A stretch of DNA of 64,000 bases, taken from Ophelia neglecta (taxonomy: Eukaryota). Below, piece by piece: positions 3,362 through 27,642 of the stretch. Every line of letters starts with the position of its first letter. Position 1 is the first letter of the stretch. Both the position numbers and the translations under genes were made by a program. The stretch lies in the NCBI GenBank assembly GCA_965285935.1, contig OZ260661.1:38378001-38442000 (forward strand), written 5' to 3'. The notes under the pieces are model-generated. The model was not told where the DNA came from and ran no database searches. It worked only from the letters and a program-made list of their open reading frames with translations.

Positions 3362-3367
3362 TTTATT
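3362..3367 (-). promoter_or_regulatory. Candidate polyadenylation signal of the discoidin-domain gene
   Basis: AATAAA on the minus strand ~140 nt after the stop codon; a second copy lies at 3317-3322. Confidence 0.45.
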
Positions 3368-3507
3368 GACATCAATATTGTGTTAAAAGAGCATGGTTTA
3401 CAAATTACACACTATGCTAAAAAAACAAGTTTAACATTAGAAACATATACAGATTCCTCCTATGTTATCATTTTGTTATCAAAGGTACGTTTATCATATT
3501 TATTTCA

Positions 3508-3663
3508 TTAGGAGATGTCTACACAGCCAATTAAGTCAGCACGCATGCATTTGTTACTATCTTTGAATGCAGATAGAGGAATGAGTCGAATCATCTGAGC
3601 CGTGATTGGCTGCCATAACATGTTAGTCTGCAAACTGTTCTGGTCGCTATTACCAGGGAAGAC
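3508..3663 (-). CDS. Discoidin (F5/8 type C) gene, last shared (constant) exon
   Basis: Acceptor cctcccacag|GTC. Encodes VFPGNSDQNSLQTNMLWQPITAQMIRLIPLSAFKDSNKCMRADLIGCVDIS*, the C-terminal F5/8C motifs (F.GN.D, PI.A..IRL.P, CMR.EL.GC). Confidence 0.93.
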   Translation of the reverse strand, partial: VFPGNSDQNSLQTNMLWQPITAQMIRLIPLSAFKDSNKCMRADLIGCVDIS

Positions 3664-3924
3664 CTGTGGGAGGAATGATAACGTTATTAGACGACATAAA
3701 GTCAAGCATTTCAACTTTTACTTCATTGGCAATGGTTTGTACATTGTCATGTAATTGGTTTCATTTGAATATTTTTTAAAAGGTTTGATTGGCTGAATGG
3801 CAGTAAGCTGAAAACCTCCCCTGCAAAATTAGCACCCTCTGGTAAGCATGTATCTTAGTGATATTTTAGGAGGGATTCTCTTTTAAATCTTTGGCACAAG
3901 GTTCCAATGCTAATGTGCTCCTAC

Positions 3925-4115
3925 CTGATCTTGGCCCAGGATGTCTGCGTAGGTAGTCCACTGGACCTCCTCTCCACTGGCAGTGGCGTCTCCGTACTGG
4001 AGCTGGTAGGAAGTCACCCACTGGGTGTAGTCTGCTCGACCTCGGGTCACCATGCCGTATATCACCCTGGGCGAACCAAGATCAAACTGGATCCATTCAT
4101 CACCATTTGGCTCTT
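3925..4115 (-). CDS. Discoidin (F5/8 type C) gene, shared (constant) middle exon; not in the ORF track
   Basis: ttgcag|AA GAG ... GAT CAG|gtagga, 191 bp, phase 1 to 0. Encodes (K)EPNGDEWIQFDLGSPRVIYGMVTRGRADYTQWVTSYQLQYGDATASGEEVQWTTYADILGQDQ, with the hallmark WIQ.DLG, T.GR and WVTSY motifs. Confidence 0.93.
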
Positions 4116-4371
4116 CTGCAAGGTGTCAATAAAATAATGAGATTTTATAGTACAAGTACTGGGGGTGCATGTACATTACCATGGATCAAGGTAAATAGTA
4201 GTATGTGGACATCAGCGGATAGGATTGGTCACACCCTTAGTGTGATTTTGATAACTCTCATTAAGGGTTCACTGTTGCTATAGGGTTTAGCAACTGAATG
4301 GAGCAATAGAACATAAGAGTCACGAAAGAGATGTTATAAAATACAAGGCACAGTTATTTAATTGAAGATAG

Positions 4372-5354
4372 TTAAACTGAGGGTAAGATGCCATTGATCT
4401 ATTTAACTGAGGGCAAGATGCCATTGATCTATTTAACTGAGGGCCAGCTGCCATTGATCTATTTAACTGAGGGCAAGATGCCATTGATCTATTTAACTGA
4501 GGGCCAGCTGCCATTGATCTATTTAACTGAGGGCAAGATGCCATTGGTCTATTTAACTGAGGTCAAGATGCTATTGATCTATTTAACTGTGGGCCAGCTG
4601 CCATTGATCTATTTAACTGAGGGCAAGATGCCATTGATCTATTTAACTGAGGACAAGATGCCATTGATCTATTTAACTGAGGGCCAGCTGCCATTGCTCT
4701 ATTTAACTGAGGGCAAGATGCCATTGATCTATTTAACTGAGGGCAAGATGCCATTGGTCTATTTAACTGAGGTCAAGATGCTATTGATCTATTTAACTGT
4801 GGGCCAGCTGCCATTGATCTATTTAACTGAGGACAAGATGCCATTGATCTATTTAACTGAGGGCAAGATGCCATTGATCTATTTAACTGAGGGCAAGATG
4901 CCATTGATCTATTTAACTGAGGGCAAGATGCCATTGATCTATTTAACTGAGGACAAGATGCCTTTGATCTTTTTAACTGAGGACAAGATGCCATTGATCT
5001 ATTTAACTGAGGGAAAGATGCCATTGATCTATTTAACTGAGGACAAGATGCCATTGATCTATTTAACTGAGGGCAAGATGCCATTGATCTGAGGGCAAGA
5101 TGCCATTGATATTTAACTGAGGGCAATATGCCATTGATATCTATTTAACTGAGGGCAAGATGCCATTGATCTATTTAACTGAGGGCAAGATGCCATTGAT
5201 CTATTTAACTGAGGGCAAGATGCCATTGATCTATTTAACTGAGGGCAAGATGCCATTGGTCTATTTAACTGAGGGCATGATGCCATTGATCTATTTAACT
5301 GTGGGCCAGCTGCCATTGATCTATTTAACTGAGGGCAAGATGCCATTGATCTAT
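4372..5354. repeat. 30-bp minisatellite, ~32 copies
   Basis: Unit tttaactgagggcaagatgccattgatcta with the variant gggccagctg. A block of variants repeats at a 210-bp (7-unit) offset (4561 vs 4771). Confidence 0.97.
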
Positions 5355-7399
5355 TGCCAGCCTTCAGGCTTGGTTAATGTCTGTGTTTATATGAACCATG
5401 ATATGTAACACAGAAAATAATCATATATTAACAGACTGTCTTTGTTTATTCAATAAACATTAGAACAAGACAGCTGGAATGGGTGATCACAGGAAGAAGT
5501 CAATTTTATAGGGGATTAAGGTAATTAAGCAAAAATTGTGAATCTACTTATAGTTTGCTGCAAAAAAGTGCAGTGGGTACTGGCCAATGCTCCAGCTGGT
5601 ACAGGCACACTTCATTCATACTCATGTTTCCTTATTACCATCCAAACCAGAAGATATTTATCAACGCATACATGTATGTAGACTTCTGAAATTTTGGACA
5701 AATGGTACCATGAACATAGGGTGTCCTGCTCCTGCCTGACTTATTTTAATCTTATATTTAGATCTAATTGTAACTTGATAAAGAACTCAACATACATATA
5801 TGATAATCTCCAGCTCGACATATTCTAGACGTATGCCATAATAGGTAACTGAATTTTTTGTAGCCAAAATCTTGTCTGGCTGTGGCACATACCTAATTTA
5901 AGTTGAAGCATTTTTATTAGAGAATTCTGTCCCACAGCAAAATTACCCAAGTCTCATTAAGTCTCCTGTGGCCATTGGATATCTACATATGTATATTTCA
6001 TTTTGTTTAGAACATTTGAGCTGCGAGCAGATTTTGAGTTTTAGATCAAACCTTGTGATTTCTCTTTGAGCTATATTTAAGTAGTTAAAAAAGCATAATA
6101 GCCACTTCAGGATTCTCCCAAAAATGTCCCATTGGAGGTCCTTGTGCATTTTGATCAAATATGTCATATTTTATAAATTGACCAGGTATGTGATTCTGTT
6201 AACCACTGTTAGGGTGATACCTTTGCAGTGGTCTAGTCAGGCTGGGTGATCTAAGGTGCAATAGTGCCCATAACAAACATCATGCAGTGATTGATAGTGT
6301 TTCTAGTTGAAATCCTAAAAGCAATGGGAATTGTATAACTTAAACACAATCTGGGCCAAGTACATATATTTTAAATATGGTGTCAATGTAATCAGAACTT
6401 GACATGAAACATCGTTTTACCTAAATGTGTCCCATTGAGAAATTTGTCAAGGCCTGCCATTCCCTAACTTTTATCATTCATTGACATTTTTAAACATATC
6501 TCATATCTTTTGAGTGTGTTCACATAAATTGAACAAAAGATATTCCAAGCATGTCCCACCATTATTATTCAGCCTGAAAGGACAATATTTTAAATGGACA
6601 GGGTGAATCAATTCATTTTAAATGATTTGTAAAATGGGATGGACATGATTGTATTGGTCAACAGGGAGTCTGGGGTAGGGGTAGAGACCCCTTAAAGTGT
6701 AGATGGAATAATATGATGGACAGAGGAACAGCCGGACCTTAATTCACTCTGTATACACTCATAAGAAGGAGGCTGGCATGAGTTAACAGGGACCAGTCCT
6801 GCTGTACCTGGGCCTTTAGGGTAAATAGGGTGAAAGTAACAGATACCTTGTAGATTCACAGTGCATCCAGTCCATAATGTAAACCAGTTAGCTACCACTT
6901 CTGTTTTGTAGACCATCAGCATGCAATATTGACATGCAAGCTTTAAATAATGTAGACAAACTGCAGGCTAGACTAGCTGACAAAAAGCCCAGAACAATGG
7001 CCAGGTGTGGTGTACTGATAAACCAACAAACTCATCCTCTGTTAAATATTCCCGGTATTGAATATCATTCTTGTATAAATATAGTTTTACTCATTAGATG
7101 ATGCCAGAACCATAGTTCATCCCTTAGTACATGTACATGTACATGTACATGTAGATACAAAATCCTACTAGAAGGGTTAGACTTTTAAATTACAGGTGAT
7201 ATTACAGGTGATATTTATATAAGTAGTACTCGGTACATGTACATGATGGGAGTGAAAGGAGCTTCAACTACATGGTTGATTTCTATTACTGTAAGTGCTC
7301 CTTCATGGTAGGTTCAAACACATTTAAGGTACCTTTAAGACAAAAGGGAAATGGAGATAATTACATGTTAAATGAAGTGGGAGAGAGTACCTATGTACC

Positions 7400-7630
7400 T
7401 ACATGTATGTGTAAACTGAAAGTTCTTCTACCTGTGTAAAATGGAAAGGGAAAGAGAAAGAACCTAGCTATGAAAAGAGGGAAAGCACCTACATGTCACC
7501 TAAAGTATGGGTAAACTGAAAAGGGAACGGGAAACAACCTATGTGCAAACTGAAAAAAGGAAAGAGAAAATACTTATGTGTAAACTGAAAAAGGGGAAAA
7601 AATACATATATGTAAACTGAAAAAAAGGGA
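7400..7630. repeat. Degenerate ~35-bp purine-rich tandem repeat
   Basis: Recurrent tatgtgtaaactgaaaaagggaa-like core, about 6 copies. Confidence 0.6.
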
Positions 7631-10600
7631 AATTAGACTGATGCTGCTTAAACTCGGTTGTCTGATTAGTGCACACCTCATTTGACCTGAGGAAGGTGCA
7701 CATGTATTGCACAGTAATGGATACCACCGTGATAGTCACAGGAGCCGGCACACTCTGCCCTCTAATCATTTTCCAAACATTACATTATCAACTACAAATC
7801 TGCCCATCTAACTTTTTAATTTTTTTATTTGAAACTAAAAGATTTTTTTATAAATCCCCCATACCTGTCTTGAGATGTTAATGGATGGTGAATCACCCTC
7901 CCATGCATGCATTCAGCTTGTCTACTCAGCATAAAGATATGTTTAGGTTATCACCTCTCCACATTGGTCATTCCAACCCTTTGTGTTCATATTGTATGTA
8001 CATGTACTTTAGAAATGTTAGTTTAAGACATATTTGTGTCAAAAAAGGTAGGAGTTTGAGTTACAATGTGACATAAATGGACTTGTATAAAGATGGTTTA
8101 GGAGAGTCTAAAGTAAAGTCTTTGTTAATTTTTTTTTTTTTTTTTTCTTAATTGGCTTTCAAAGGCATCTTAACAAATATGGATTCCTTGTTTGCTTATC
8201 AAGAGTTAGAGCATAGTTGGTGAACAAATATAATGCTTTGAGAAGAAGGAACCCAAAGAAATTCACACATAATTATAACCCTACTGCAATTTAGCCTCAA
8301 TAGAAAAATAACCAGTTTTATTTTGAAAGAAAGTTTGCTGGGTAGCAACCAGTGATATTCAGACTGAATCTTTGGTTCCCATTTAAAAAAAAAACTTAGC
8401 GGGTGGTGAACCATCATACGGATAGTATCAGGCACGAACAAAATACTCTTAAGTTAACTGCAGGCAAACTGCAAAACAAAATGTAAAAATATTTTTTAAA
8501 TTTGTTCTTGCTTACAAGTCAAAATTCTACTAGTGTGTGCCCTTAACCCCATCTAGTGTACTATATACATGTACTTATAAATTTACAGTAAAGCCTGGAC
8601 ATTTTATTCTTCATTTCATGCAAATTTTGAGCTATTTCACTTATATTTTCCCATACCTTGACCCAGCCGTGCAGTATGTCAGACCTGCATTACACATCCC
8701 AGGTCGTAGTTCAGTCAAACAATAGAACCCTCTTAATATAGGTTACAATGGAACAAGCAAAGAAAGCTGTTGCATGTTCATATTGGCTCCCATAACCTGC
8801 CAAACCGACTCAACTGTGCAAGTATGTGCCTAAAGAACCTTTGCACCTGTAGCTGGGTTTTCCATTTTACTATAAGTTTTGATGGGTGACTACTCATCAG
8901 TGGATGGAGTTATAAAAGATGGCTGTCATTAGACAGTGTGTGACGGCATTGCATGAGAGATGGCATGCCAGCCAGAAGTGGAAGACTAGATCAACCGAAA
9001 ATAAACTTACACACCCCCATATTACTGAATTTTTAATAGAACCACACAATCTATAACAATTTAAAATGTCGACAAAAGGTGCATGGTTCTAAGCTTTGCC
9101 TCTGACTTCAACAAATTTAAAAGCTAGTAAAGGCGTGTTTCTTTGGCTTGCTATCTGCACTACCTGAAAGAACATTTTTGTGAAAGTCATGACTAAAGAT
9201 GCTTAACCTCGCGAGAGTTATCAATCACACTGCTGTGCATTATTGTCTATTTAGTTGTCAGACAGCTTATACACATTAAAGGATACAGCAGCAGTCGAAC
9301 AAGTTAAAAATGAAATGCTGTTGTGAACATTTTCACCAACTGAATGTTAAGACATTCGAACACGATACTCTTTGGAATTAGTGCATGAAAATACTGTGAA
9401 TTGCTATCATTTCTGCTGTTTTATCCCTCTGGGAAAATCTCCTCTGCTGCTATTATTGTAAGCAATCTACACAACAACTTTAAGAGAAATGTTCATGCTC
9501 TCTTTTATACAGTTAACATGTAAAGTGCCTTGATGCACTGATGGATGGTTTCTTGAAACCTAAAAAAGGCAAAATTTATGTGTATCAGTTTAATTAGATG
9601 TGCATTTTCCACCAGGAATTGTTCATGAGGTAAATACATGTACACAAATAGCATACATGCATGTACATGTACTTGGGCATGTGCATGTGGATGGTGGGTG
9701 CAACAACAAAAAATGTTGCCAAGGACTTGTATATGCATGTATGCTATACACGGTATAATGTTCATGTAAAGTTAGATGTAGATGTATTTACATGGAGGTA
9801 TGACCCATCAATTATACCATCCCTTTACTAAGTGCAACGTTTAAAGAATGTAACGGTGCGTTCCCTCAAGCAAGCTTCGACTGTCACATCATTCATAAAC
9901 ATGCAGTCACCACAGTTATGTGCTGTTTTATAGTTATTGAATTACATGAACTAAGTGCAGATGCATGCAGACTTCTTTAGAATTGTTTGGGAAGATGAAT
10001 AGTTTGATAAAATGGAATACCCAACTCAAGTATGTTCCTTGATTTGGAGCAAGTCTGTTCAGTGAACTGATTAACCACACTTAAATGATAAATATCCTAT
10101 TTCAGGTATTGCTTCTCTTTTGAAGTCATTAATAAGTCATCTTATAGTTGCTCTGTCATTGCACTTACATTCTTAGCTTGATGACTGTTATTTTAAATAT
10201 TCATGCCACAGGAATAACCACAGTATGGCAACAATGTCATACTTCCAGTAGTGGAGATTATTAAAATACCTTACTTTTGTGTTCTTTTACGTGTATTCAT
10301 ATTAGTCATTTATAGTTTACTACTTGTGTGTAGTATACATATGGAAGGATTACACATACATGTATATTTATTCAGCTAGGATTTCAATGTTTTTTAAAAT
10401 GTTTTTTCCTGTGTTGCTGCATATCATTCAAATATACAGACTGTATGAGATAAAAATGTACAGTATACATGTACATCTTTTATATCAAAAATGTATGGTA
10501 TACAGAGTTCATTGATAGGTTAATTATCATCAGAAACACACAAAATAAATCGTTGATATTTACTTTTAACTTTTTAGACCAATTTTAATAATATCTGCCT

Positions 10601-10635
10601 CTCCATGCCCTTGTACATATAAGTAGTATTTGAGG

Positions 10636-11932
10636 GCCTCCGCCAGTTGGCGCTGGAAGCATTATATCATCAAATGGTGTCTGGCCTCATGTTTTTGTCT
10701 TGGCCACTTTGTGAATATGATATCTTAAAAACGAAAGAAGGGAATTATTGAAATTGTGCACAAAACCAGCATATTAGTTTGATGAACTGATGAGATTTTG
10801 GACATGATTAGATACCAAGGTGGTCGTGGCCGGTACAGCCATGGTCTTGATTATCCTGCCTCACATTACTATCTGAATGGCTTAAGCTGCAGGTCCCTGA
10901 AGTAGTCAGCGCACAGAACGGGGAAAGTCTTATGGCTTTGGTTTTGATGACATTCTGAATGAAAACAATACAGCCTCTAGAGTCATGCAACATTCCTGTG
11001 CATCATGGTAAACATTCTTAGTAGGGCATGATATGCATATGAAATGTGTTAAACACTAATAGGACATCCTATGTTTGAAATCTAATGAGAATTTTGTATC
11101 TGACCTTTACCTCTTCTTCAAGTTCAAAAGGAAACTGATTTGTCAACTGTGCATAAATGCTTAGCGCTAGATAGGCATATCAATTTGACCTTGACCTCTT
11201 TTTCTAGCTATTACCTATAATCTGACCTAAACTACTTTTTTTTTAAATATTGCTAGAATAGGAAGTGATAAGTGTGGATTCTAAAGATGACCTGCACAGT
11301 GAATACATATCTGCTCAAGGTTGCTAGGTACATATGTAGAATGTACTAAACGCTAATAGGAAGTCATGTACAAAGAACTGATAACCTTCAACTTGGCCTT
11401 TACTACATATTTGCTTAATGGTGCGAGATAAGCGTTTCAAATGTATGGACGATATGGATCACCAGTACGGAGTAACATGCAAGGAACATAATTATTGCCA
11501 TGAATTTGATCTTGGCCTTTTTCTTCAAGGTCAAATTGAAAATTCTGGTTTTCAAGTTTCAACACAAAATACATGTATTTGCTTAATAGTGCTGGATATG
11601 TATATACTGGGTAAATTGTGTTGACCATTAATAGGAAGTCATATGGAAGTCATATGTTAAGATTTTGTAGATGCCCTTCAGTTGGACCTTGACTACTTAT
11701 TTGTTAAATGGTGCTAGATACACATCTGGGCATATAGAGAATGTATGAAAGAATTACATGTATTAACCCAATCTTGCCATTGATGTCCACCTTGAACTTT
11801 GCCCTAGGTCATATTGATAAATAAACATTTTGAATAATCAATAAAGGCATATAAGCAGTACAGTGAACTGTTTCATTATCATCTGTTTCTTTTTACTTCT
11901 AATGACAGCATGGTGTTAACAGCATTCTAGTT
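10636..11932 (+). mobile_element. Old, degenerate Helentron-associated (HINE/DINE-1-like) element
   Basis: Starts gcctccgcc...gcattat and ends cattctagtt. Carries internal repeats (taataggaagtcatat, tttgaccttgacct) related to the repeat unit of the element at 48543-50147, in the opposite orientation. Confidence 0.6.
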
Positions 11933-14900
11933 GTGTGTTCTGATAAAACCAGGGGGAAGGCATGCATAAATGTATGAATCAGTGATGCATGCCTCAAAAT
12001 AAACCATTATCACCTAGAGCACAATGGTCATGGTCCAGTCAACACATTATCACAGTCAGAGACTTCATCAGGAGATGCATTGTGATGGGATCTTCAAATG
12101 GTTGTCTTGGTGGACAGGCCTTGGGCGGTGCTTTGTCCATGCTCATCCACAGGCACAAGTTAGAAATGCCAGTGATTTGCAATAAAATGCCCTTGTGAAT
12201 ATAGCTTTAATAATGAAACATGTAGGCTTTGCAGGTTGTGGATCATTGCCAGTTTTGGGCCTGATATCCATTGATATCCCCTGCATTTGCCACAGGATCC
12301 CTGCAGTTTGACTACGCACATTGCAGCTGTATTGGGCAAAAGCGAGATACTATTGCAAAGGGTCACTGCCCATATATCTATGGGCCCTCTGTTAATATAG
12401 CATCAGATCAGCACTAGTTATAGACCCCATAGTGAGCTGCACTTTGGTGCTAGCACATGCGGTGCTCCCAAATAAGGCAAAGCTTACAATTTGACCATCT
12501 GACACCTCTAAAAACACGGCAAATCCCCTGCTGGGGAATTCCTTGATTACTATAACAAGGGTAACCTTAATATTTTTAATAATATCAATTATCCAATTAA
12601 AGACATGCAATTTATTAAGTTAGTGCATGTGGGTCACATCTTCTATATTGTGTATTAATTTCTAATGCTACATTTTTTCTGTAAGAATAATTCTCTGTGT
12701 CTTGTAATAGATGTACATGTATAGATTTTTAACTTGTCAGGTTGTCATGTAAATTTCTCATATTTACACCCAGACTTCTATATTTTTCTGCATACCTTAA
12801 CACAAGTAAGGTATTGCTTGTTTCTGCAGATTCTCAGGTTTCAAATTTAAAACAAATGTTGTTACTCAAGTGCTTATGAAAAGGGTTGTTAAATCCAGCA
12901 AAAGACTGATATTTGTCAATTAACTATGTTAAATGCTTGGCGTTCACCAAGGCCACACAGCGTGTAGTGGTGAAGACAAATCCAAGAAATTGCAAGATAA
13001 CAAGAAATACCAATACACAAAGAGGGTCACCGGTTTGTATAATACACACACAGCAGACTTCTTAAGAGTCAGTGTGTCTACCATCTTGTGTACATGGACC
13101 CATTGGAATTCTGTCAGACAGGGGATGGGGGAGGGGGAGGTACTCCCATATATGGCAGGTTTGGGAAGGTTGCACAGTTAGGCACCTCTTTTTCCATGTA
13201 ATACATTTTAACCTTGCCTCATTCACTCAGGATCACGGCTGGGAATAAACCTGCTGGATATGGTGAAGTTCAAGTCTAAGTTCGTTCCTATCAGACTTTA
13301 GTTCCAAGTCAAACCCCTCCCTCTTATCAGACTTTTTTGCACTGTCTAAAATTTACCTCTAAAAAATTAAGGTGCTTACATTGGGCTTTCATTTCATGAA
13401 AATATCAGCCACTGTGACACTGGAATTTTTACAGAAAAAATCTGCCTCTTGGCACACCAGTGGAGGCTCTGTGCGACCTCCCCTCTTATTTCATAGGGTA
13501 GTGTCCCCCTCCCCCCCCCCCCCCCCCCCGCTTCATTTCAGAATCCACCGTGCAAAAAGAACCTGCTTCAGATCAGTTTCAGGTCTTCATTGAAATTGCT
13601 GAAATGCCACAAGTGTTGCTTTAACCACTGACACTTGCTTGAATAGTGACACGGACATGTATCCTGCAAGATTTATTTAATCAAATGGTGACACTTTCAG
13701 TTGCTTCATTAAAGAAGCATTGTATTATGAATCTAATCTGGCTATGAAGTACATGTACATTTGTCAGTGGAAAGACTGTAAGGCAGAACCCTGACGCTAA
13801 GAAACAGGGGTGCCACAGTCAAAGAATCCATTCCAAGCCCTGCATGTAGTAAGGGATTGAACACTTCCGAATCACACAGGGTTAAACCTTTAACAATTGC
13901 AGTTAAGCTATGCAGGTTCACAAACTTGGTACCGTGCTTGCCAAACACTGAGGGACTGAACAATCACTGGATTAGTATAGTCACAAAGCTTACAAAAGCT
14001 CACAGAAGTGAGAATTTGTCTGTAAGTTGTCCAAATCCCTTACCCTAACTCGTACATCTAAAAGCGTGACGGGAACAAATAGACACGGAAAAGCTTTGTG
14101 AAAACAAACACAGTGAATTTTTCCACAACACGTTCCAATTTCCAACAATGAACAATGTCTCAAACAATGTCTAGGGAAGGTCAGAGGTACAGAGTTCAGC
14201 AGACGTACATGTACATCTAAGTACCTGGTATAGCAACTGTTTATTTTTAATTTGTATAGAAAGTCCTATTAAAAGCATTTCATTGCCTCAAGCAAAATAT
14301 GATATAAAATAATATTGTCTTCCAAACCTTCATTAAAGATAATTAGGTAAATAATCTCCAAAAAAATTATGCAATTTCAGTGATATTTGAATGCAATATA
14401 TTAATCAGACTTATTTTATCGACTGTTTTCTTATTGATAAGTTGTGCATATTGAAAATCAATACCTCTGCCAAGGTGCTTACATATTGAGTATTGTGCAG
14501 TTTTGGCAATACTTATGAAAATAATTGTAGGAGGCTAATAGTTAGGCCATTCAAAGTAGTAAATTGTTTCTGAGGCTCTGTAAGTAGACAGAAGGTTTCT
14601 TGTTTTCTTTAACAAGTTTCCAGTGATGTTCTGGCTTATTTGGGAGATTGAGGGCAGTTTTAATTTTCAAATATCCATTTCCTTATAAACGTCCATACCA
14701 TCTGAAACATTCTGTTTTTAATAGGCAGGAAGGAGGGTAGTTCATATGTAGTGTCCACTCACAGGTGGTGCCAAAGAAACACCTTTATAATGTTTTCTGG
14801 CCTCACTATTCGGGTGCTTGTGTAATATAACAGAGGCCATCATATTATTAGTTCATGGTTTACATTAACTTTTCAATGGTATTTAAGTCTGGTGAGAGAA

Positions 14901-17026
14901 ACAATACTACATATGAGTCATGTTTTACATGAATTATCAGACATGTATATACCGGTGTATACATCTCTGGCACTATGTATTTACAGTGTTTTTGTGCTAC
15001 TGTAATGTATCGTGCCACTGCAGTGGATTTAACAGGAATACTCAAAAACTGAATTGAATATGTTCTGCTCTCTGAGCGTTTAAACTTCTTAATTTATTGA
15101 CAGTAAAATAGATGCATTTTTTTTCTTGAGATAATTATATAAAATCCAAAATTTTATAATTTTAGTTCTGTTCTCTTTACAAAATATTTGGCTTCCTTTC
15201 TTGTAAACCAGACAAAAAAGATGATGACCTTTTCTAAAAATAAATTCTACAAAAGTAGTCCATAATTATAATTCAATTTAATGAAATTAATGGCATTCTC
15301 AAGCTGGCAACCCTTGATGTACATGTGCATGTGAACAGTAACCCAAATACTATCAGGACACAATCCAGCTAGTAGCATTCTTATATTCCTCAATGTTTTT
15401 CATAAAATATCACAAACCATTAACATGAGAAAACAGTGGACATGAAGTAAAGAGTGACCAAGCTTCCCACAATCAATGGTTTGTTACCTGATGTAGACTC
15501 AGTAGAGATGCCTGTGAGGAAACAAATATACAAATATAAAGGGGAAAAAACAATTCTTGTCCATTCCTAGACTAAAAAAAATTATTTCTCAAAATCTTAA
15601 ACCAATATACATGTATTAATGTAAATGGTAGTAAGGTGAATAGGGACATCTGGGATGACTTTGTACTTAAATTGGTGGCATAACTGTTGGCATTTGTGTT
15701 TGTCACCACCCGGAATTGTCTTGTGTAGGATGTTCAGGGATACAGTCGACTTGCCACTTGGTATGTACACATACAGGCTGTACATTAGTACCGGTACATA
15801 CACGTACATGTAGAAATGTAAAGCGAAACAACACCTACTCTAGCTAAAAGCATAATTTAAGTTAGTGCAAACTGACTTATTTACTCCCTTCTGTTCATCT
15901 GAAGAGTGCAAGAACACTTAAAGGATATATGTTGCCATAAATTTCACAGACATGTTTCAAGTACAAACCAAGTGGTGAAAGTAGCCAGTAAAATTGGTTT
16001 CAGCAATGTTCTAGCATGCATTCCATGACTTCTGATGTGTGAAGGGAAATTATTAGGTACTTAACAAATTGTGAGGAGACACTGTTATCTTGGGTGTTTT
16101 TGGATCGTGCATTTTATACATGCATACTTGGTGGAAGAGCAATTTGCTATAATGTTTGCTTCCAAATATTGAAGAAAATTATAAAGTTTCAACCCATCTT
16201 TGCAATTCAACAATGAAGTTTGATCAAATGTCATGTAGTTTAAGTGATTATACTTAGGCCCTATAGCCGTTTCTCTCATCCAGTATCTAGATTTATTCAT
16301 TTCCTTGAATCACACATACTCTTATCTTTCATCAAATCACATTAGATCTTAATGTGATCATAGTTTTTATCACAAGGATTTTCCAGAGTGTTAATTATAA
16401 GCAATATGGGATAATTTCTGTGTTCCGTAGTTTTCTTGAATAAAATTGTAAACATGATAAAGAAATAGATAAATTTTCTATGGCCAAACAGAGTAATCAT
16501 ACCAGATGTGTATAATTTGCAAAGAAAGTTTTTCAGCTGTTTCAAAATTGTATGCATCATAGTTGGAACAGACTGTGGAGCTTTTTGTCCTTGTTTCAAA
16601 GAGGAAAATGTTGAGAGATTCTTTGCCAATGTCTGCGGTATATATTTTTAGCATTCATAGTCTGGGTCTAATTTTAATTATCAGTGTGAGGGTTATTTCT
16701 ATAAAGAATGACTAAGAGATGACTTTAAATAAGTGCAGCAATTTAACTATTTTTACGTGAATATACCTTGATGTCTGACTTCAAGGCTGGCACTGTTTGC
16801 CACTTAAGGTCTACACGTGGCCTCCGAATGCTGTTATACCGTCTTGTAGGTTTACGTTACAAGACCTGGCCTTCACTCGACAGAATGTACAATAAGGTTC
16901 AACCTTCAATTGCCATCCACTTTTAAAGCAGCATGAGTGAATTATGACTGCATTAAAACCACCCCTGGTTCTTCACCTTGATTTGAAGCATATTAATTCT
17001 TGGAGCGTGAGAAGTATATGACTTAC

Positions 17027-17804
17027 TAGGACACCAGGCGCCTGAGGCGGTATCGTCTGGACTGGTGTTAATCCTGCCTCTCACCGGGATGTGAGTCGCA
17101 TCGAATATACTGGAGCTGGTAATACTGGTGTCAGGAATGGACTCCTCCTCCCCAGACACTATTAGACCCTTTCTCGAGCAAAGGGAATAACCTGTTTTGA
17201 AATCATTCAGCTGCTCCTCTAACGTTGTGGTCAGTCGAACTAGCTCAGATATCCTAGTGTTGGCTTCTAGAAGCTGTTCCTGGCTAGTGAGAACCGAGTC
17301 TAAACTCTCCTGTGCCGTTTTTGCCACAGAGTCAATGCTTTCTTCTTGCTGTTTTAGGGTAGTCACAAGAGTCTGAATTTCCTGTTGCTGGCTATCCAGC
17401 CGCTCACCAATGGAGTCACATTGGTCGCATGAAGAATTGTCTGTTTTGTTTGTGTTGGCAGCTAATCCTGCAAGCAGTGTGCCCTGCTCATTGAGTGAGT
17501 TTTGGAGAGAGATGAGAGTTTTGGCCTGTTCTCCAGTCCAAACCTGGAGGGCAGAAATGTTTTGACTTAGGTCCTGTAGTGTGTCTTCCAGGCCCTCATT
17601 GCTGCCTTCTCCAGATGTTTGAGGGCACACCCCATTTTCACTCTCTTTATAGATGGGCATTAATAAAGTATAGGCACATTGTCCATTCACAGTTTTCTCA
17701 CATTGGCATGCTCGTGAATAGGTCTTTTGGCCATGGATACAGGTAAAAAATCCAAGTAGTACAATAGTAAGCCAAAGCAGGGATATATCAAGTCGTAAAG
17801 CCAT
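17027..17804 (-). CDS. Discoidin gene, variable first coding exon A: signal peptide, Cys cap, coiled coil and start of F5/8C; 374 aa when spliced to the constant exons
   Basis: ATG at 17804, hydrophobic signal peptide, RACQCEKTVNGQCAYTLLMP, heptad-rich region, then CSRKGL...ITSSS...GRIN...GAWCP. Donor CCT A|gtaagt (phase 1) is in frame with exon 3925-4115. Confidence 0.9.
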
Positions 17805-20310
17805 ATTGTTGGTGTAGAATAAAAGTGCCTGTAGATCTTATAGAACTAATATGACAGCACCATACATCTGTCCTTGTATCGCATTGAAGCAAGGTAAAAT
17901 AAACATGAAAAGTCAATGGCTAGCATAATACTACCTGTTCATTTTGTAATAAACTATTTCCCTATCCAGTGTTGTGAAGAAAGTCCAACTTATTATCATC
18001 CCGAGCTGTTAAGCCCTTATTACCAGCCAGCTAAGCCTCGCTTTTACCCAACAGGATAGGCCGGCAGCTTTGAGGCAAGCAGTGCAGTACGTGTATGAAG
18101 CCCTCAATGGCAATGACTGATCAAACCTGTAAGAAATTCACGCTTCCTGGCTACAAATAATGTCCTGCCAGTAACAGACCTATGAACATAGCTGGTATGC
18201 AGGCCGCTGCAGTTTCTTTGGAGTACTTTCAGAAGTGGCAGTCTTGGTTGGACGCTCCCTGAACATGCATTAGGATGGCCCAACCAATTTTTTTGATTGC
18301 CAGTTTCTCTATTTAAGAATCATGGAAGGCTGACTATTTCATACCAGGGCTGACATGCTTATCCCTTAAGTTCATTACTATTGTGAAGGTACAGCAAAAT
18401 ACCCAGTATTTATGAAACTCTATGCCTAAATATTTATGATGAAATGTGCATTCAATAAACAGCCGTTATAATTTGCATAAATAATTCAGTGATTATATTG
18501 CTATTTGACAGTTAGTAATGAATACAAGCCAGACAGAATTACATTTGAATCAATTATTGAGTGGGTTTTCATTTGGTACATTTGAACAGTACTTTGGGAA
18601 CTTATTAATATGGATATTTATGACTCTGGTCTGGCTTTTGTTGTTCATTGAGTAAGACACAGAATGCTGTGTTCAATGATCCAGGAATTCCTTCTTTATT
18701 ATTAATTTTACATATAACAATATCCATGTGAAAATTGGGGGAATCATGCAGGAAACAAAAAGCGTACATTTTCATTCAACACAAATAGAGATTTAGATTA
18801 TTGAAATAGTATTTTATGATTGGTAGGTGTTTTTCTACTGGTTTATAATCTACACAAAATATCCATTTGAAAAGCAACTCCTGTTTAATTTCTTAAATTT
18901 CAAGCCTACATAACATGGCGACATGTATCAATTTTTAATTTTGTCATCCAACTGCGATTTAAAAAGGCATGCATGCCCCCAATAGAATAATACATTGATA
19001 TAATTATTAATCTGTATCCTTGTATCAAAACCGTTTTTCCCAGTCTTCTTCACAATGTGTTACACATTGTTTTTTTCTTATGATGGGGTTCTCTATTATT
19101 CATGCCATGTCATGATTTACAAATTTTCTTTATCAATTTAAAACTGGCCAGTTGATGATCTACACAAATAACTGTTTACTGATTCATTATTTGATAGATT
19201 TTACAGTTCTTAATGGTCCCACCATCATGGTGCCACATATTCAGCATTGATTCTTGTTTTATAAAACTGTCTTCTAAGATCAAGACAATTCTTTCCCAAA
19301 GCATTTGAAGGTTCCACAGACATATGCTGCTAAAATGAATCTCTTAATACCAATAAGTACTGGACATGCCAGATACCTGTATCTGTTCTTCTCTACACAA
19401 ACAAACCTGCTCTCAAAAAGAGCTTTTCTACTCTGACCGCACCAGTGTCATCACCGCTAGTTCCTGACATCTGTCACAATCATTGCAATTCAATGTAAAT
19501 ATTGGTTAAATCTTTCATGTTCTTGGATATAGAATTGGTTATGATGTGTTTCCTAATACACCGCCGGCCATGTTACAGTAGGCAACTCACGCTGCACATA
19601 CCTGGTTTCCTTTGGTTTATTTGGTCTGGCCTAATGACGATGGGTTTTGTCCCAAGCTGTGACTTTCAAAAGCAACGTTTTTACCATTTGAATAGGAGAG
19701 CTAAAGACAACATGATTGTATAGGCATATACCAGGATCTGGAAATATGTACTACTATATTACTAGCATATTCTTTTTTCTCATCTGGTTAAAGAACCTAC
19801 ACAATTTTCCTTTAGGGCCTTATATACAAAATATGCCTATTACATGTAGGTTCCAATCCAATTAAGTCTCGGCGTGTTACTGTGTTAAGGATATTTGTGT
19901 TTCAATGATCTCTTTCCTTTGCACATTACTAACCCTTTATACCCAAGGAGTGGGTGGATCTAGCCTATTACAGAGCCTCTGACCGGCCCAGGGGGTCAGT
20001 GTTTGACCATCACACTGTATAGCACCATCATTAAACGTGAGCCCCGTCCCAGTCAAGTGTGTGATACCCTAGGAAGTCTGATACAGGCATTGTGCATAAT
20101 GTGGATGTATAGTGCAATACCTTTGATGAACATTGGAATATTTCAAGCATATCGCTGGTACACTTAAAAAGGATCCACTTTTTTATATTGAATCCAAAAA
20201 AATAGAAAAAAAACAATTTACATGTTAGTTGCATGCTTCAGTACTGCTTAAATGAGTTTGTTTTATAAATAAATATAAAATGTTCTTCAATTTCTCCACC
20301 TTTCATTTAA

Positions 20311-20365
20311 CCCTTTCATATTGCCCCAGAGCCAGTGTTTTTCAGGCGATACCGTAGTGAAAGGG
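20311..20365. mobile_element. 55-bp piggyBac-like mini-element
   Basis: TTAA|ccctttca ... tgaaaggg|TTAA: TTAA duplication with CCC/GGG termini and an 8-bp perfect TIR. Confidence 0.55.
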
Positions 20366-23300
20366 TTAAGCTTTAAATGGGTTTAATTACATAATTATTT
20401 ATCACACCGGAGAAAGCTTGGAGAAAGCTTTTCCAAAGTACCCCAGGTCAGTACATCATGAATTAGGCTTAAAGATCGTCAGTCTTATGTTCTGCCTTCG
20501 CTAAAAATACATTTACATGAACATCGTATATAAAATGTAATTCTAAATACATTATATACATAGATATGTGCATATAATCAAGAAGATACAGCGATGTATA
20601 TTTGAAGTCACATTATAGCAAGTACAATCAGGCATGTACTAAACTCTCATCTAATAAATACACACCAATGTACATGTACATCCTTCATTCAAATTTAACC
20701 TGTTAAACCAATGACCTGAACAGCTGAATGTAGCACTATAGTTTATAAGCTGCAGTGACCACGCTTGCTGGTTTAGAGACAATACATGCACACTTGTCAG
20801 AACAGCTTTTGAATAGAAGGTGTTTAAATGTAAGAAATAATTCTAGCCAATGGTTATCATGGATGTCTTTGAAACAGGATATGCAATATTTCCAAATATC
20901 ACACTGTCACGTCTGCTGCCTATGAACATAGCGAATCATCATGTTATCACCTCAGGAATTTACTGTCTCGCCAGTTTTTTGTCAACTTTTTCTATAAGTT
21001 ATACTACTTAGGAGGATCAAATTTGAAATCACCTTTTGAACCAATTAGGAGATGGATAACATAATGCTAAAAGCATAGGAGCAAGTTTGTTAACAGCGGA
21101 AAAGTATTACATTTCTGTTCGTGTACTAGTTTTGTACAATACTATTGGTGTCTGGGAATGAATATACATGTACATGTACAACTGACTATGTGCATTTGAA
21201 AGTTAAATTTATATTCACTGATATTTCATTTTGTGTGACTAATTATGACAAGAGCCCCATCAAATAATATAGATACTTTTTATAGACGTTTTGGGACACA
21301 TCTAGGCCTGTCAGGTAGTTGTCTGGTAGTGTTTACACTACTACCCTGTTGGATAAGTCACATAGATGTACATGTAGGATGTATTAATCAAAAGATAAAA
21401 TACACAGTTACTAGATGGCACTACTGACTGACATTTTAATTACCAGTTGTCACCTCATTTATATCATTTTAGCAAAATATACTGTTAGGTGGTATATTAC
21501 ACCGACAGGGATGATTAAAATCATATACTGTGTACCGGTAATTAAAAGCTATCAGGTCTGTTACCAACACAGGTATATATATTAATTCATGCATTTAAAA
21601 GATAGCAAATAAAATGTTCATGCACCAACATTTAGTGTGAATAGTATATGTACATGCAGACATTGTAATAAAGTAATGCAACCCCCCCCCCCCTTCCCGC
21701 CCTACCTCCCATGACTGACAAACACACAGCCCCATCCCCACTCCCCTACTACCACTTGGTAATTGCTAGCAGTAAACAACATTATGGCCCTATACACCAG
21801 TACCTAACTCGTCTTACTGCCAAGGTATGTAATTGATGTCACTTGACACCACAAACTACAAAAAATATGGCTCCTAAATACAGTTGCCATAATGGCCTGA
21901 CTGTGTAAGCTGGGAGGCTAACATATAATTTCTATCAGTTTAAGTTCCATAAATCTGCAGGGGTTCTTGTCACCTGAATCTCTGGCAGGAAAATATGTGT
22001 TGGGAAACCTTTTCAAGTCCTGCTGAGCACATGTATTAAATATAATTCTGTTATCAAATATAGACTTACCAACATTACCCAAGTACTTATATAATTATCA
22101 TGCCAGCCTGAGTAAAGGAGGAAATGTCTTAATTATTAGTATTTGCCGTTTCAACTTGTCTGTAATAAAGAGGCAAATTTTGCATTTTACATTTCCCTCA
22201 AACTACTTCCAATATTCAAAATGGTAAAGGTCACCCACGATTTTTTTTAATCACTATAAGCCTTTTGTAGGTATCCATAGCATAGAGTACCATAATTGAA
22301 ATTCTTCAGACTGAAGTGCATCGTTTGTTATTTTAATTTATAATCTTATTATTGATATAGGTAGGTTATGACTGCCAAATTCTTGCTATGCCAGGAAGTG
22401 GAATGCAATTGATACATATTAGGGTCTTTGATGGTAAAAATAAACTTTGCCATATGAGCAAAATGCTAGTGGAGTTTGCTTATAATGTTATGTCACATAC
22501 CAGAACACTGCATGCATGTCGATGTAATACCATTTTGAAAATACCTCTCTTTGATTGGTTTCATGGTCTCATCAGAGATTTTACTGTACTTATTGAGATG
22601 TTGTAATTATGATATACTGCCTGTAATAATACACAGTGCACATTAACATTCTACATTATCAGATTCCTAAGGGAGAAAGAATACCTGTTTTCAGGCACTA
22701 AATACATGGATTTTTTTAACATTCAAAGTAGTCTACATGTACAACATACTGCCAATCTGTCAATAGGTAAATGTCTAATAATACTACTGCAAAGTAGTCT
22801 TCTAAAACTACTACTACAGCCATACAATACTTTAAGTAAGAAGTTAAAAGGTTGCATACGGTTTGGCCATAGTGGTCAATCCATATAGCTCCCAATACAT
22901 GAACTAGCCTAGTACATGTACAATGGAAATTCATGCAGATGTATCAACGTGATACTGATAAGCAATCTCAGTGATTTTGTACCAGAAAAACACTTATTGT
23001 TGAAAAAGATATGGCCACATGCAAATATGATGTTTAAAACCTGGGAAAGTCAGTCTGAAAGCTTGCGATTGATAGCCACCACTTTAAGTTTGGTTTCCAT
23101 ATCTTTAAGTGTGAAGGTACATTTCTAATAAATCCTAATTTAGACATGATCTTTCTATGCTGCCTCAGTGACTAGGCCTATTTTGTTGAGAAACATGTCA
23201 ATATAATTAATGAGATCACCAATTTTTTGAAATTCTGCCTTTTTCTTGACCCCCCTTATGTTGTAGTGTGTACATGCCAGCAGAGTCTACAAGCTCTGAG

Positions 23301-24689
23301 TTATGTTTTGCATAACAGAAAGTTTCTCGTGATTCAACCATGGGGAAGATTCTCCATACTTTGTAACATCCAAATTGGGTTACCATCATTTAATAGACAG
23401 TGCATCATTTTGATGGTCAACCATTTCTTAATTGAATTTGGATATCTAGTCTTAAATGACAAATTCATGTTTTAATACAATGTCAATGGCTGTACAGGAT
23501 CATAAGGCTGTTTTTGCTGACATGATCCTATATTAATAACAGTTATAATGATTAATATATCTTCTTTTCTTCTGGGAATTTGAAGCACTAGTTTTATTTC
23601 TGTTATTATTTTGTGACAAAATCCCATTCCACCTGCCCTCCCCCCTACACAAGTTCACAATTTTTGCTGAACACACCGAGTTCCGGACCAAATTGAATAT
23701 AATAATAAATTGTCACCCGAGTAAATTTTTACCCCATGGCAAAAGCCAAGAAATTACTCATTTTGCATACACATTACTTTATATTTATATTTGGATTTAA
23801 ACACCCTCTCTGGCAGATTGCCAGACAGAAAAAAATCTTGAATCGATGAAGGCCAGACATAAAAATAACTACCATGGCTCTGTGACCTTATTAAACCTTT
23901 ATTATATTGTGTCTGTGCTAGCTAGATGATGTACACCTCCCCCTCCTGCAAAACTAATTTAGACTTAAACTGGCAGGTGGACCCATGGAAGAACAAACAC
24001 TGGGGATGTGGCAGACAGACATTCATGTAGAGCTGTATATCCAATAGGCAAATAATAAAACACACTAGAGTATATGTATATACATACATACATACATACA
24101 TACATGGGTATGTACAGCTATGGGGGATGATCATTCCTTGAAATGATATCAACCTGTATCATTTGAAACATCAAGGGATCTCTCATCCCCCAGATACTAG
24201 ACGACTTCTTTTCATCCTTACAGCTACTCCAATAACAGAGGGATGGGTGTACAAGGTTTCCGTTGCAGATTTTTGCACTTACATTTGTTCTTGCCTTGAT
24301 CTTAAAGCCTCATAAGTCTAGAAGAGGCAGGCTTTCATCTTCACCCCTATTGCATACATGTACTTGTTTAGAAGGAGAAACAGATTTTTTTAATATCTCA
24401 AAATTTTATATATTTTTTTTAAACCCTGACGTTCGTTCATGTTAAATCGGAGTGACTGGTTATTATTTTTGTATACATTATACATGTTTACATTTATTTC
24501 CTTGACTTTGGACTGCCACAATATCTCCATTTATTTTCTTCAATTTTGTTCTAAAGTTTATTATAATTCTGCAAGTCAGTTTTAATTATCATATGATGAA
24601 CCCATGCTAGTGTTGTGCACTAGCAGATGCTGTTGGTAATATTGTAACCAAGGAAGGGTAATAGCTAACAGGTCAGACCAAAATTGTCA

Positions 24690-25010
24690 GGACCAAGTCA
24701 TATGGTTTATAAGAACAAGGTTCTAAAGACGAGGATCATAGAACAGATTTGAGGTTCTCAGAGGTTATCATTACTGAACCTGTTGTTAAGACAAGGTTTT
24801 CAGGACAAGGTTTTCAGTACAAGGTTTTCAGGACAACATGTATGTTAGGGCAAGGTTCCAATGTTTTTTATTACATTATTTTAGGAGGTAATAGTTTCAA
24901 TTGGCAAAATCTCTCAGAACAAGGTTCAGAAGAACATCATTCTCAGGCCAAGGGACTGTGATCTCTCCTAAGGGCAAGAGTCTCAGGACTAGCTTCGTAA
25001 GAACATTATG
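24690..25010. repeat. Degenerate ~19-20-bp tandem repeat
   Basis: Recurrent acaaggtt(c/t)tcaggac-like core. Confidence 0.55.
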
Positions 25011-26840
25011 GGATAACTCAAGATTGTATTAACCTTGGAATATTGTTTAAGATGTCTAAACTATATAGAAGAACAACCAGCTTCAAATGGGAGATGGCAA
25101 GTAATATAAAAGATTCAAGTCCTTAAAAACAAACAAGGTACATGTAGGTCACTAGAGTCCATTTCTAACAGGAAGCTGCCCCACCCCCAGTATCCACACA
25201 TTTAAATAATTATATCATCTATCTTATTTTTCAGTCATCAATTCACAATAATCTAGGAACATATATGTAATAGTGAGTAGTAAAATATGTCCAAATGATA
25301 ATCATCATAACCAATCTTTGGTTCCTAACTTACAACCTCTATCAGAACTAAAGTAGTTTATCTTCTTGTTTGGTAGCTCAAGGACACATGATTATGCAGG
25401 ATAACTACTTTTTATGCAATTGGTTTCACCTGCCAACAGTCACTATCTATTCTGCCTTCCACACAGATGATAAAGACTGTATAGCAAGAAGTTGAACATT
25501 CAGATTTCTTCAGCATTGCCAATGCCTGATGCTGCTGTGTCATACTGATAGGGAGCACGATATTAATAAAACTTATTTAAATGGATATAAAAACAAAACT
25601 CATGTCAACATTTCACACTAAGAAAAAGTTGAATCATACTTTATGAATTCAGATTTCAAATTCCTCATAAAATGTTGAAATGACATAATTATTGTGACCA
25701 CGTCACCCATATACAATACAATAATTAATTTAAATTATATATATGGCATTGGTTTCAAACTATCCACATTCTGCCTCCCCCCTCCCCCCCCCTCCCCCAC
25801 TCCACTGATGTGACATATGTTTCCACCAGGTTTAAATATTTTACTAAAGGCAATATCAGTACTGGGTAAATCAGGTTTATCATGATGAATTTTAACATTA
25901 TAGGCCTACATGTACATCATGTGTCTTTAATGAGAACCAATATTCTTACAATACATTAATGTACAAGCAAGACTAAGGCGACTGTATTTATACCGCTGAA
26001 GCTGTTTGCTGATAACATGATGGCAATCTTGAATTAAGTTTTGATAACCAAGATTAATCTAAACCTTTATATGAGATGAAATCTCTACATAGTTCATACA
26101 TTTTCAAGCCCAAATGTTAATTATCTCCTCCATACATAGTAGTGTGGATTACTCAATAGCCCATACAACTCTTGGTTGTAGATGGGGTCCTTAAACAGTG
26201 TTCCCTCTCTAGTATCTGGCTTATTGGTGTTTCTAAGGTTTCTAAATGTGTACATGTACATGAAGGTAGCAACTATGAAATCCTTAGGTGACTATTTAAT
26301 GGTAACCTTTAATTTTGACCTTGTAATCATAGTTAAGGGTCATGGGGTACTTACAGTAGTGGGTAGGTCATATACATGTATGAATGTGTCATTAGGAAGG
26401 GTCATTTTTCTAGGCAAATGACCCTATCCAAGGGGTTTTTTTACCATATTTTCCAAACAAAAGTTGTCTCAGAGAGAAGCACTGTGTGTTCTCTTTTGTA
26501 CATCAATAGTGTTGTTTTAGTCAAGGCAGTCAGTCATCAAAAGGGGTTGTTCTTCAAAAAACTATCCTACCAAGTTTTGCTTTTTCGTCATAATCCCCTA
26601 ACCAAGGGTACCTTTTGTTGTCAGATCTCCTTAACCAGGAGTATGTTTTTTCCCTAGCCAAAAGTATGGTTTCAGAACCTGCAGCTGCACACCTGTATGC
26701 TCATATTTTGGACACCACCCCCCACCCCCCCTCCCAGGGATTGACTAATATGGAAAGTGATGTGAAGAAGGAATGTCAGAAATAACCCAATCAAAGCCAA
26801 AACTAACATTTTTTGTCAACTATAAAGTGGTTGAACTTAC

Positions 26841-27642
26841 TTGGGCACCAGGCTCCAGGAATTCCAGTTGCGTGGACAGACACCTTGTCTATGCCATGCT
26901 GGTCATTGTACTGACTGGAGAGCTGGACTCCCACGTCTGTCTTGAATGTCCCGTTTTTGTACGAGGCCATCAGACCTTTCTGAAGGCATCTCTCACTTCC
27001 CTGGGTTACCGTTACCAGCGTTTTCTGTAGAGATGTAATCTTGTTCTCTAACACAGGTATCTTATCATTATAAAGCTGTTGTACTTGCTTCGCTAACGTG
27101 TCTGTATCATTCTTTATTGAAATAAGGACCATGGTGGTGCTATCGGTGACTGTCCGCATGCTATCTAACCGTGCCTGGAAGTTGTCTATTTTATTTTTGA
27201 GTGCTAGCACATCAGCAGATCCAGTCGTGGGAGGTGAGGACGATGTGTTTGAGTTTTGTACTAGAACCGTTGTGACGGTCTGCTGCACAGCTATCATGCT
27301 GGCCTGCAGACTGGAGAGCAGCTGAGCTTGTTCCAAGCTGTACCTCTGGAGCTGGCTAACGTTTTGTACCAGATTCTTAAATTCCTCTGAAGATGGACTA
27401 GAAGATGGAAACCCTGAATTTGAGGGACAAGAATCGCCGTCTGGTGGTAGTGCATTCTTGTCCAGAGGAAGTAGGAGTGTATAGGCACACTTTCCATCGA
27501 CCACATACTCACAGTCACATGTCCTCATGTAGGTCCGCTGTGCACTTCCTGTCAGCACCAGGCTGAGCAGTATACTCAATGTAGCCCAAAACAATTTCAG
27601 ACATTTTTTCCTATTCCAAGTGTCAGCTGCCATCTTGTACAT
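26841..27642 (-). CDS. Discoidin gene, variable first coding exon B, paralog of exon A; 379-382 aa when spliced to the constant exons
   Basis: ATG at 27642 or 27633 (the ORF-track start is TTG). Signal peptide, RTCDCEYVVDGKCAYTLLLP, coiled coil, CLQKGL...LSS...GAWCP. Donor CCA A|gtaagt has the same position and phase as in exon A. Confidence 0.85.

Follow-up and report, generated by a model that had tools for sequence, protein, structure and literature searches.

Two paralogous first exons and one shared pair of discoidin exons in a probable two-isoform gene of Ophelia neglecta

Introduction

In the UGT1A locus and in the clustered protocadherins (Pcdh), tandem paralogous variable first exons, each of which is thought to have its own promoter and to carry only a 5′ donor site, are spliced to a set of common exons (PMC1885805, PMC3325998). 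GCNT2 has also been counted among the clusters that contain several variable first exons (PMC1885805). The present work concerns a locus on a 64,000-nt stretch of Ophelia neglecta DNA (GenBank assembly GCA_965285935.1, contig OZ260661.1, positions 38,378,001 to 38,442,000; hereafter, the window), in which two diverged paralogous first exons, designated A and B, precede a single pair of exons that complete a discoidin (F5/8 type C) domain. Well-documented cases of alternative paralogous first exons are few and mostly come from vertebrates, and the locus described here belongs to an invertebrate family of predicted secreted proteins.

The closest formal parallel is GCNT2 (IGNT, the I-branching enzyme of mammals). 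A few large paralogous first exons of GCNT2 stand in tandem, encode the N-terminus and a part of the globular domain, and are joined to the same two constant exons. In both loci, the border between the variable and constant parts cuts through a domain. The product of GCNT2 is a type II membrane glycosyltransferase of the Golgi with three variable exons, whereas the locus of O. neglecta has two and would encode a secreted discoidin protein on a stalk. In addition, promoter use is documented for GCNT2, whereas separate promoters are proposed for the locus studied here.

UGT1A and the Pcdh alpha and gamma clusters resemble the locus in having tandem paralogous first exons, one donor phase, and one set of constant exons. 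However, their variable exons form arrays of 9–20 or more and undergo lineage-specific birth and death, while exactly two exons, fixed for a long time, are present here. A first-pass annotation made from the sequence of the window had likened the locus to protocadherins and UGT1A; the comparison is right in kind but generous in scale, the locus having two variable exons and no array.

As for the encoded protein, retinoschisin (RS1) similarly has a signal peptide and an N-terminal oligomerising segment before one F5/8 type C domain, but this segment is a short RS1 domain, in contrast to the cysteine cap and helical stalk of about 140 residues found here. To our knowledge, retinoschisin has no paralogous alternative first exons. 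The module order is also that of proteins of the myocilin/olfactomedin and angiopoietin type, which consist of a signal peptide, N-terminal cysteines placed close together (CxC), a long helical stalk, and a binding head at the C-terminus. The head is an olfactomedin or fibrinogen domain in those proteins and a discoidin domain in the present one. The likeness is in module order only, and no similarity of the cap and stalk to the N-terminal families of olfactomedin/myocilin or angiopoietin was found above the threshold in Pfam. Thus, a known design, that of variable first exons and constant exons, is met in an uncharacterised protein family. Its members are labelled only “hypothetical protein” in the databases searched, and a literature search found no description of a stalked discoidin family or of its first-exon layout.

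Results and Discussion

Exon Structure of the Locus

All four coding stretches of the locus lie on the minus strand. The features are as follows (a slash within a sequence marks an exon border):

26841–27642, minus strand: exon B, distal variable first exon with its own ATG, a signal-peptide-like start, and the phase-1 donor A/gtaagt
17805–26840, minus strand: spacer between exons B and A; holds the candidate promoter of A, no discoidin exon found
18114–18173, minus strand: candidate proximal promoter block of exon A, conserved and non-coding, 310–369 nt upstream of the ATG of A
17027–17804, minus strand: exon A, proximal variable first exon with the same module order as B and the phase-1 donor A/gtaagt
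4116–17026, minus strand: 12,911-nt intron of A-type transcripts, which in B-type transcripts makes up the lower portion of the intron
3925–4115, minus strand: constant exon 2, encoding the central discoidin segment (Pfam F5_F8_type_C positions 34–82), acceptor ttgcag/AA
3508–3663, minus strand: coding part of constant exon 3, the last discoidin segment, which includes the C-terminal Cys; stop codon TAA at 3508–3510
3499–3504, minus strand: AATAAA hexamer 4 nt past the stop codon, a possible poly(A) signal judging by its sequence

Translation gives 259 open codons plus one base for exon A and 267 open codons plus one base for exon B, which has a second ATG 9 nt after the first. Both exons end with GAWCP followed by A/gtaagt. 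Exon 2 begins after the acceptor ttgcag/AAGAGCC at 4115 and ends at the donor CAG/gtagga at 3925, and exon 3 begins after the acceptor ccacag/GTCTTC at 3663. According to a local frame check, either first exon joins exon 2 in frame through a Lys codon. The predicted A product comprises 374 aa, and the predicted B product 382 aa, or 379 aa if translation begins at the second ATG of B. The implied introns are 12,911 nt in the A form and 22,725 nt in the B form, the latter being composed of the spacer 17805–26840, exon A, and the region 4116–17026.

Exons A and B are related (BLASTP E-value 6e-24, 30% identity over 270 columns). The 64 kb contain only 10 open reading frames (ORFs) of at least 110 aa, the longest two of which are A and B, so chance can be excluded as their origin. 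The first-pass annotation had placed all four exons and both introns correctly. Its description of A and B as homologous but diverged open exons, each with its own ATG, signal-peptide-like start, shared module order, and phase-1 donor, was borne out as well, as was the in-frame Lys junction with the resulting product lengths.

Taken as a whole, the locus is likely to be one minus-strand gene with two mutually exclusive paralogous first coding exons and one shared 3′ exon pair, and this gene very probably makes two protein versions. According to the proposed mechanism, the choice of promoter would select first exon B or A. First exons have a donor and need no acceptor. A transcript starting at B would be spliced from 26841 to 4115, and exon A would be removed as intron, since first exons carry a donor only. 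A transcript starting at A would be spliced from 17027 to 4115. In O. neglecta, exon B is presumably used and joined to the shared exons in this way. Each first exon would have a promoter of its own.

Two secreted and probably oligomeric lectin-like proteins, 374 and about 380 aa long, would result, both assembling via the cap and stalk and presenting the discoidin head. With the discoidin core in common, they would have different stalks and a different initial portion of the binding face. That they are secreted, oligomerise, and bind a ligand is predicted from the module composition. The exon swap would replace the signal peptide, the assembly stalk, and a part of the binding face within a single globular domain. 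Such a gene may provide a simple test system with two states instead of dozens. The gene model is also of use for annotation, as pipelines that are based on ORFs or on single isoforms would miss exon B or call it as a separate fragment.

Copy Number of the Shared Discoidin Exons

Searches of the window were run exon by exon, and exons were joined only for frame checks and for building the hidden Markov model (HMM). A tBLASTn search with the two exon peptides (E ≤ 10, word size 2) found no second discoidin exon pair in the 64-kb window, the remaining matches being noise. An HMM of the constant part, built from six species and compared with all six frames of the 64 kb, matched 3925–4115 (E-value 6e-28) and 3511–3663 (E-value 3e-24). 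No third discoidin piece was found in the window with this model, the next best match having an E-value of 1.2. Exon 2 is present in a single copy in the 762-Mb assembly; the next match is 43% identical and lies on another contig. Both single-sequence and profile searches found exactly two members of the first-exon family in this genome, namely, A and B. The first-pass annotation had seen no second copy of the two shared exons between B and A or between A and 4115. The tBLASTn, HMM, and genome searches likewise revealed no private set of exons 2 and 3 for B there or elsewhere in the window or in the genome.

Layout in Other Assemblies

Loci with two first exons, the B type followed by the A type, were found in assemblies of three other species:

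L007 (ENA ERZ25069296, species 2): B-type exon 2607–3380, A-type exon 10001–10789; nothing discoidin-like between them; the contig ends 760 nt past A
L015 (ERZ25070786), first exons: B-type 1105–1843 with donor C/GTGAGT, A-type 6270–7005 with donor A/GTAAGT
L015, discoidin exons: exon 2 at ~14357–14563 and exon 3 at 14833–14979, a single pair downstream of both first exons, with none in the B–A interval
L017 and its near-copy L018 (ERZ22147071): B-type exon 10001–10885, A-type exon ~5.9 kb downstream, ending at 17532

No discoidin exon was found in the L017/L018 locus, where L017 ends 3.3 kb past A. In L017, a signal-peptide-like start lies in frame with the A-type exon, upstream of the ORF as called. 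The order of the exons (distal B type, proximal A type), their strand, and the loop-length signature described below do not differ among the four species with the layout.

L017 and L018 are two long contigs of one assembly, which encode the same B-type protein and have nearly the same A-type exon; they are probably haplotigs or a recent segmental duplication.

These loci bear on the suggestion that the layout is an assembly artefact, in which a collapse or deletion would have removed the 3′ exons of an upstream gene copy. Nothing beyond the general possibility of such errors speaks for it. The window contains no N, and exon 2 occurs once in the whole genome. Three assemblies of other species have two first exons with no discoidin exon found between them, and L015 additionally contains the single discoidin pair, which argues against an artefact. 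We regard this explanation as extremely improbable. The comparison of variable-exon number across orthologous loci that the first-pass annotation had proposed thus gave two first exons, B then A, at each of these loci, and its own caveat about an assembly collapse is contradicted by three independent assemblies.

Promoter Region of Exon A

The 60-nt block at 18114–18173 is 80% identical in species 2, and its 19-nt core (18137–18155) is identical. The core contains CAGGAAGC, with an ETS-like GGAA core. The 19-nt sequence is unique in the window, and outside the window it was found only at the corresponding place in L007.

Additional data come from an A-type mRNA contig of species 3 (L008, encoding protein P0002). 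In species 2, the genomic DNA immediately upstream of exon A is colinear with the 283-nt 5′ untranslated region (UTR) of this mRNA, which begins ~40–100 nt downstream of the conserved block (species 2 coordinates). A promoter of exon A located between B and A would fit both the conserved block and the colinear 5′ UTR. No conserved block comparable to that of A was found upstream of B. In Pcdh, stochastic promoter choice operates via a conserved sequence element, whereas no promoter motif common to A and B was found at the present locus.

Some sequence features of this region could also be read differently. AG dinucleotides following pyrimidine-rich stretches occur shortly upstream of both ATGs, and the block conserved upstream of A has a terminal sequence readable as a splice site, as would suit a gene with one shared upstream promoter and a non-coding leader exon, in which A and B are mutually exclusive internal exons chosen by splicing. 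However, the species 3 UTR, being colinear with genomic DNA, gives no sign of a spliced leader. The conserved block lies just upstream of the mRNA 5′ end, where a promoter is expected, and each of the two exons opens with its own ATG and signal-peptide-like stretch. An arrangement with a shared leader exon is therefore considered unlikely, and separate promoters for the two first exons are preferred.

Domain Structure of the Predicted Proteins

Each first exon encodes, in order, a signal-peptide-like start, a cysteine cap, a helical stalk, and the first ~48–50 residues of the discoidin domain. The cap has the pattern CxC...C; Q-[KR]-T-Y-x-R-x-C-x-C-E ... C-A-Y-T-L-L, and the stalk is a long helical region of low complexity. 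The remaining ~115 discoidin residues, including the C-terminal Cys, are supplied by the shared exons. No Pfam family was detected above the threshold in the cap and stalk of either first exon, where only sub-threshold coiled-coil noise was seen.

According to the Pfam analysis, exon 2 corresponds to positions 34–82 of F5_F8_type_C (PF00754) with an E-value of 7.8e-10, which passes the cut-off. Exon 3 corresponds to positions 86–125 (E-value 6e-4) and taken alone stays below the cut-off. In full-length relatives, the match covers profile positions 1–127 with E-values of 1e-19 to 1e-27 and begins ~30 residues before the exon 1/2 junction; in P0002, for example, it spans residues 251–388, with the junction at 280. 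Since the Pfam match begins before the junction, the initial third of the discoidin domain belongs to the variable exon, and the fold is cut by the border between the variable and constant exons. The N-terminal Cys of the discoidin domain is invariant in both exon types. In the C2 domains of factors V and VIII, the N-terminal part holds the Cys that pairs with the C-terminal Cys, as well as the first binding “spike”.

The nearest neighbours in the feature space of the ESM Atlas were small F5/8 type C proteins, with retinoschisin in third place. An AlphaFold2 model of the orthologue P0002 contains helices at 79–131 and 142–216 and a beta-rich domain at 233–392 that spans the junction; the model was built from a 4-row alignment, has a mean pLDDT of 52, and is too poor for a fold search.

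Relatives of the First Exons

A search of 1.8 billion representative sequences with a first-exon profile identified 88 proteins with E ≤ 1e-10, and word-indexed searches gave few. Most of the family matches are ORFs of exon size (230–310 aa) whose reading frame extends into an intron by a few codons. In almost all of them, WC[PAS] is followed by residues that spell N/GT[AG], which indicates that the intron position in phase 1 is common to the family. About 50 ORFs of the family, from both types, share the location of the phase-1 donor. The family as a whole is widespread and uncharacterised, and the locus offers a handle on it.

In the tree of 54 first exons constructed with FastTree, two broad groups are seen, the A type and the B type. 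In the A type, the loop preceding GAWC is longer by three residues. Exon A of the window grouped here, with a support of 100, with its orthologues P0001 (genomic, contig L007 of species 2) and P0002. The B type has a short loop (...PGAWCP) and includes exon B of the window, which grouped with its orthologue P0003 (L007, species 2) with a support of 98, and also P0018 and P0058.

Four full-length members of the family were found, namely, P0002, P0018, P0058, and a hypothetical protein of Helobdella robusta (XP_009009893). Both exon types are joined to discoidin exons in mRNA of other species. An A-type exon precedes the discoidin part in P0002, whose contig L008 is intronless. A B-type exon does so in P0018, from the intronless mRNA contig L013 of another species, and in the full-length protein P0058; the intronless status is known for P0018/L013. 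At the locus of P0013 (L014), a single first exon was seen, with no discoidin exon inside 10 kb, and the locus is uninformative for the layout.

Several variants of the architecture were observed in the family. The contig of P0007 (ENA ERZ26222911, 237,601 nt) has three ORFs of 312, 303, and 299 aa on the same strand, 2.4–4.6 kb apart, the first of which is an A-type first exon; these may be more than two variable first exons or tandem genes. In P0042, P0063, and P0066, the coiled coil is followed, within one ORF, by a mucin-like insert that is rich in Ser/Thr and several hundred residues long. The ORF continues past the insert into the start of the discoidin domain in P0063 and P0066 and stops inside the insert in P0042. 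In P0057 (Logan contig, 6750 nt), the intron between the first exon and exon 2 is short and can be read through in frame, whereas the corresponding introns of O. neglecta measure 13–23 kb.

Age and Conservation of the Two Exon Types

Exon A of the window grouped with the A-type exons of species 2 and 3 (support 99/100), and exon B with the B-type exon of species 2 (support 100/99; 98–100 across trees). Because each type groups across species with high support, the A/B duplication is older than the split from species 2. The identities of the encoded segments are as follows:

A vs. B (window): cap 64%, stalk 25%, discoidin N-terminal part 29%
A vs. A (window vs. species 2): cap 84%, stalk 54%, discoidin N-terminal part 56%
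B vs. B (window vs. species 2): cap 96%, stalk 35%, discoidin N-terminal part 55%

The constant part is 57–59% identical to that of species 3 and species 5.

Comparison of the window with species 2 gave dN values of 0.35 for A and 0.50 for B, while dS was saturated (>3 or undefined). Of the dN/dS analysis suggested in the first-pass annotation, dN was thus obtained, but the ratio is not usable, and the saturated synonymous sites leave only the qualitative statement that dN is much lower than dS. Both exons are under purifying constraint. The claim that frame and donor are kept despite strong divergence stood up, since both types remain open and retain the Cys pattern and the phase-1 donor over a distance at which synonymous sites are saturated. 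Judging by the sequence comparison, each exon type is conserved in its own right, including the segment that would be meaningful only in combination with the constant exons. Several species have retained the arrangement over a period in which the variable exons drifted apart to ~30% identity.

These data also concern the question of whether exon B is an orphan of a tandem duplicate that lost its discoidin exons and is now silent or encodes a truncated product ending 12 codons into the intron. Indeed, B evolves faster than A, as the above dN values indicate, and its unspliced ORF runs to 26803, that is, 12 codons into the intron. On the other hand, the B-type exons of all four species with the layout are open and have a signal-peptide-like start, the Cys pattern, and a canonical donor despite saturated synonymous sites, and the cap and discoidin part of B are well conserved in the species 2 orthologue (96% and 55% identity, see above). 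Furthermore, the discoidin part encoded by B cannot fold alone, and the usual partner of its invariant Cys is encoded only by exon 3. The disulfide in question is general to F5/8 type C domains. The joining of a B-type exon to discoidin exons in mRNA of another species is likewise at odds with an orphan. We therefore consider it quite improbable that B is an orphan, and a functional first exon sharing exons 2 and 3 with A is the preferred interpretation.

A number of results weigh against this interpretation or against parts of it. The best tree for the four species separates proximal from distal exons, but the support is weak (79/84 with 14 rows, 61/79 with 8 rows), and species-wise groupings, which would imply independent duplications, were not rejected (p-AU 0.24–0.27). 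In a search for a second isoform with the 3′ part of P0002 and a different N-terminus, P0002 was the sole match from its own sample, and the only other match was a discoidin protein of Capitella. The TATA-like hexamers close to the two ATGs are weak hints, and that of B lies too near the first ATG to be convincing. Finally, no second first exon was found within 10 kb of the Helobdella relative (L019; KB095811.1, gene 10001–11849), a locus that includes 2.6 kb of N. The gene is compact (1.8 kb), with short introns and an extra intron within the first-exon region. As this compact gene has one first region, the layout is not universal in the family.

A single ancient duplication is favoured, though not proven, by the tree topology, the shared indel, and the shared exon order. 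A more far-reaching proposal is that the two-cassette layout is ancient and of single origin across distant invertebrates. The gene would then encode two non-mixing oligomeric lectins, each assembling like with like via its own stalk and carrying its own first binding loops on the shared discoidin core, and would act as a fixed two-state recognition switch. We put this forward tentatively and consider it rather doubtful.

Other Features of the Window

A scan of positions 1–30000 of the window with Rfam gave no match. Inside the first intron, a 234-aa ORF is located on the plus strand (4388–5092), residues 59–85 of which match Pfam UCR_6-4kD with an E-value of 1.3e-5, slightly above the cut-off. 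This ORF could represent a small nested gene or a retrocopy, or be due to chance. On the plus strand at 54272–55075, a 267-aa ORF encodes a partial trypsin-like serine protease domain (Pfam Trypsin, E-value 8e-10); this is a neighbouring gene on the other strand, located upstream of exon B.

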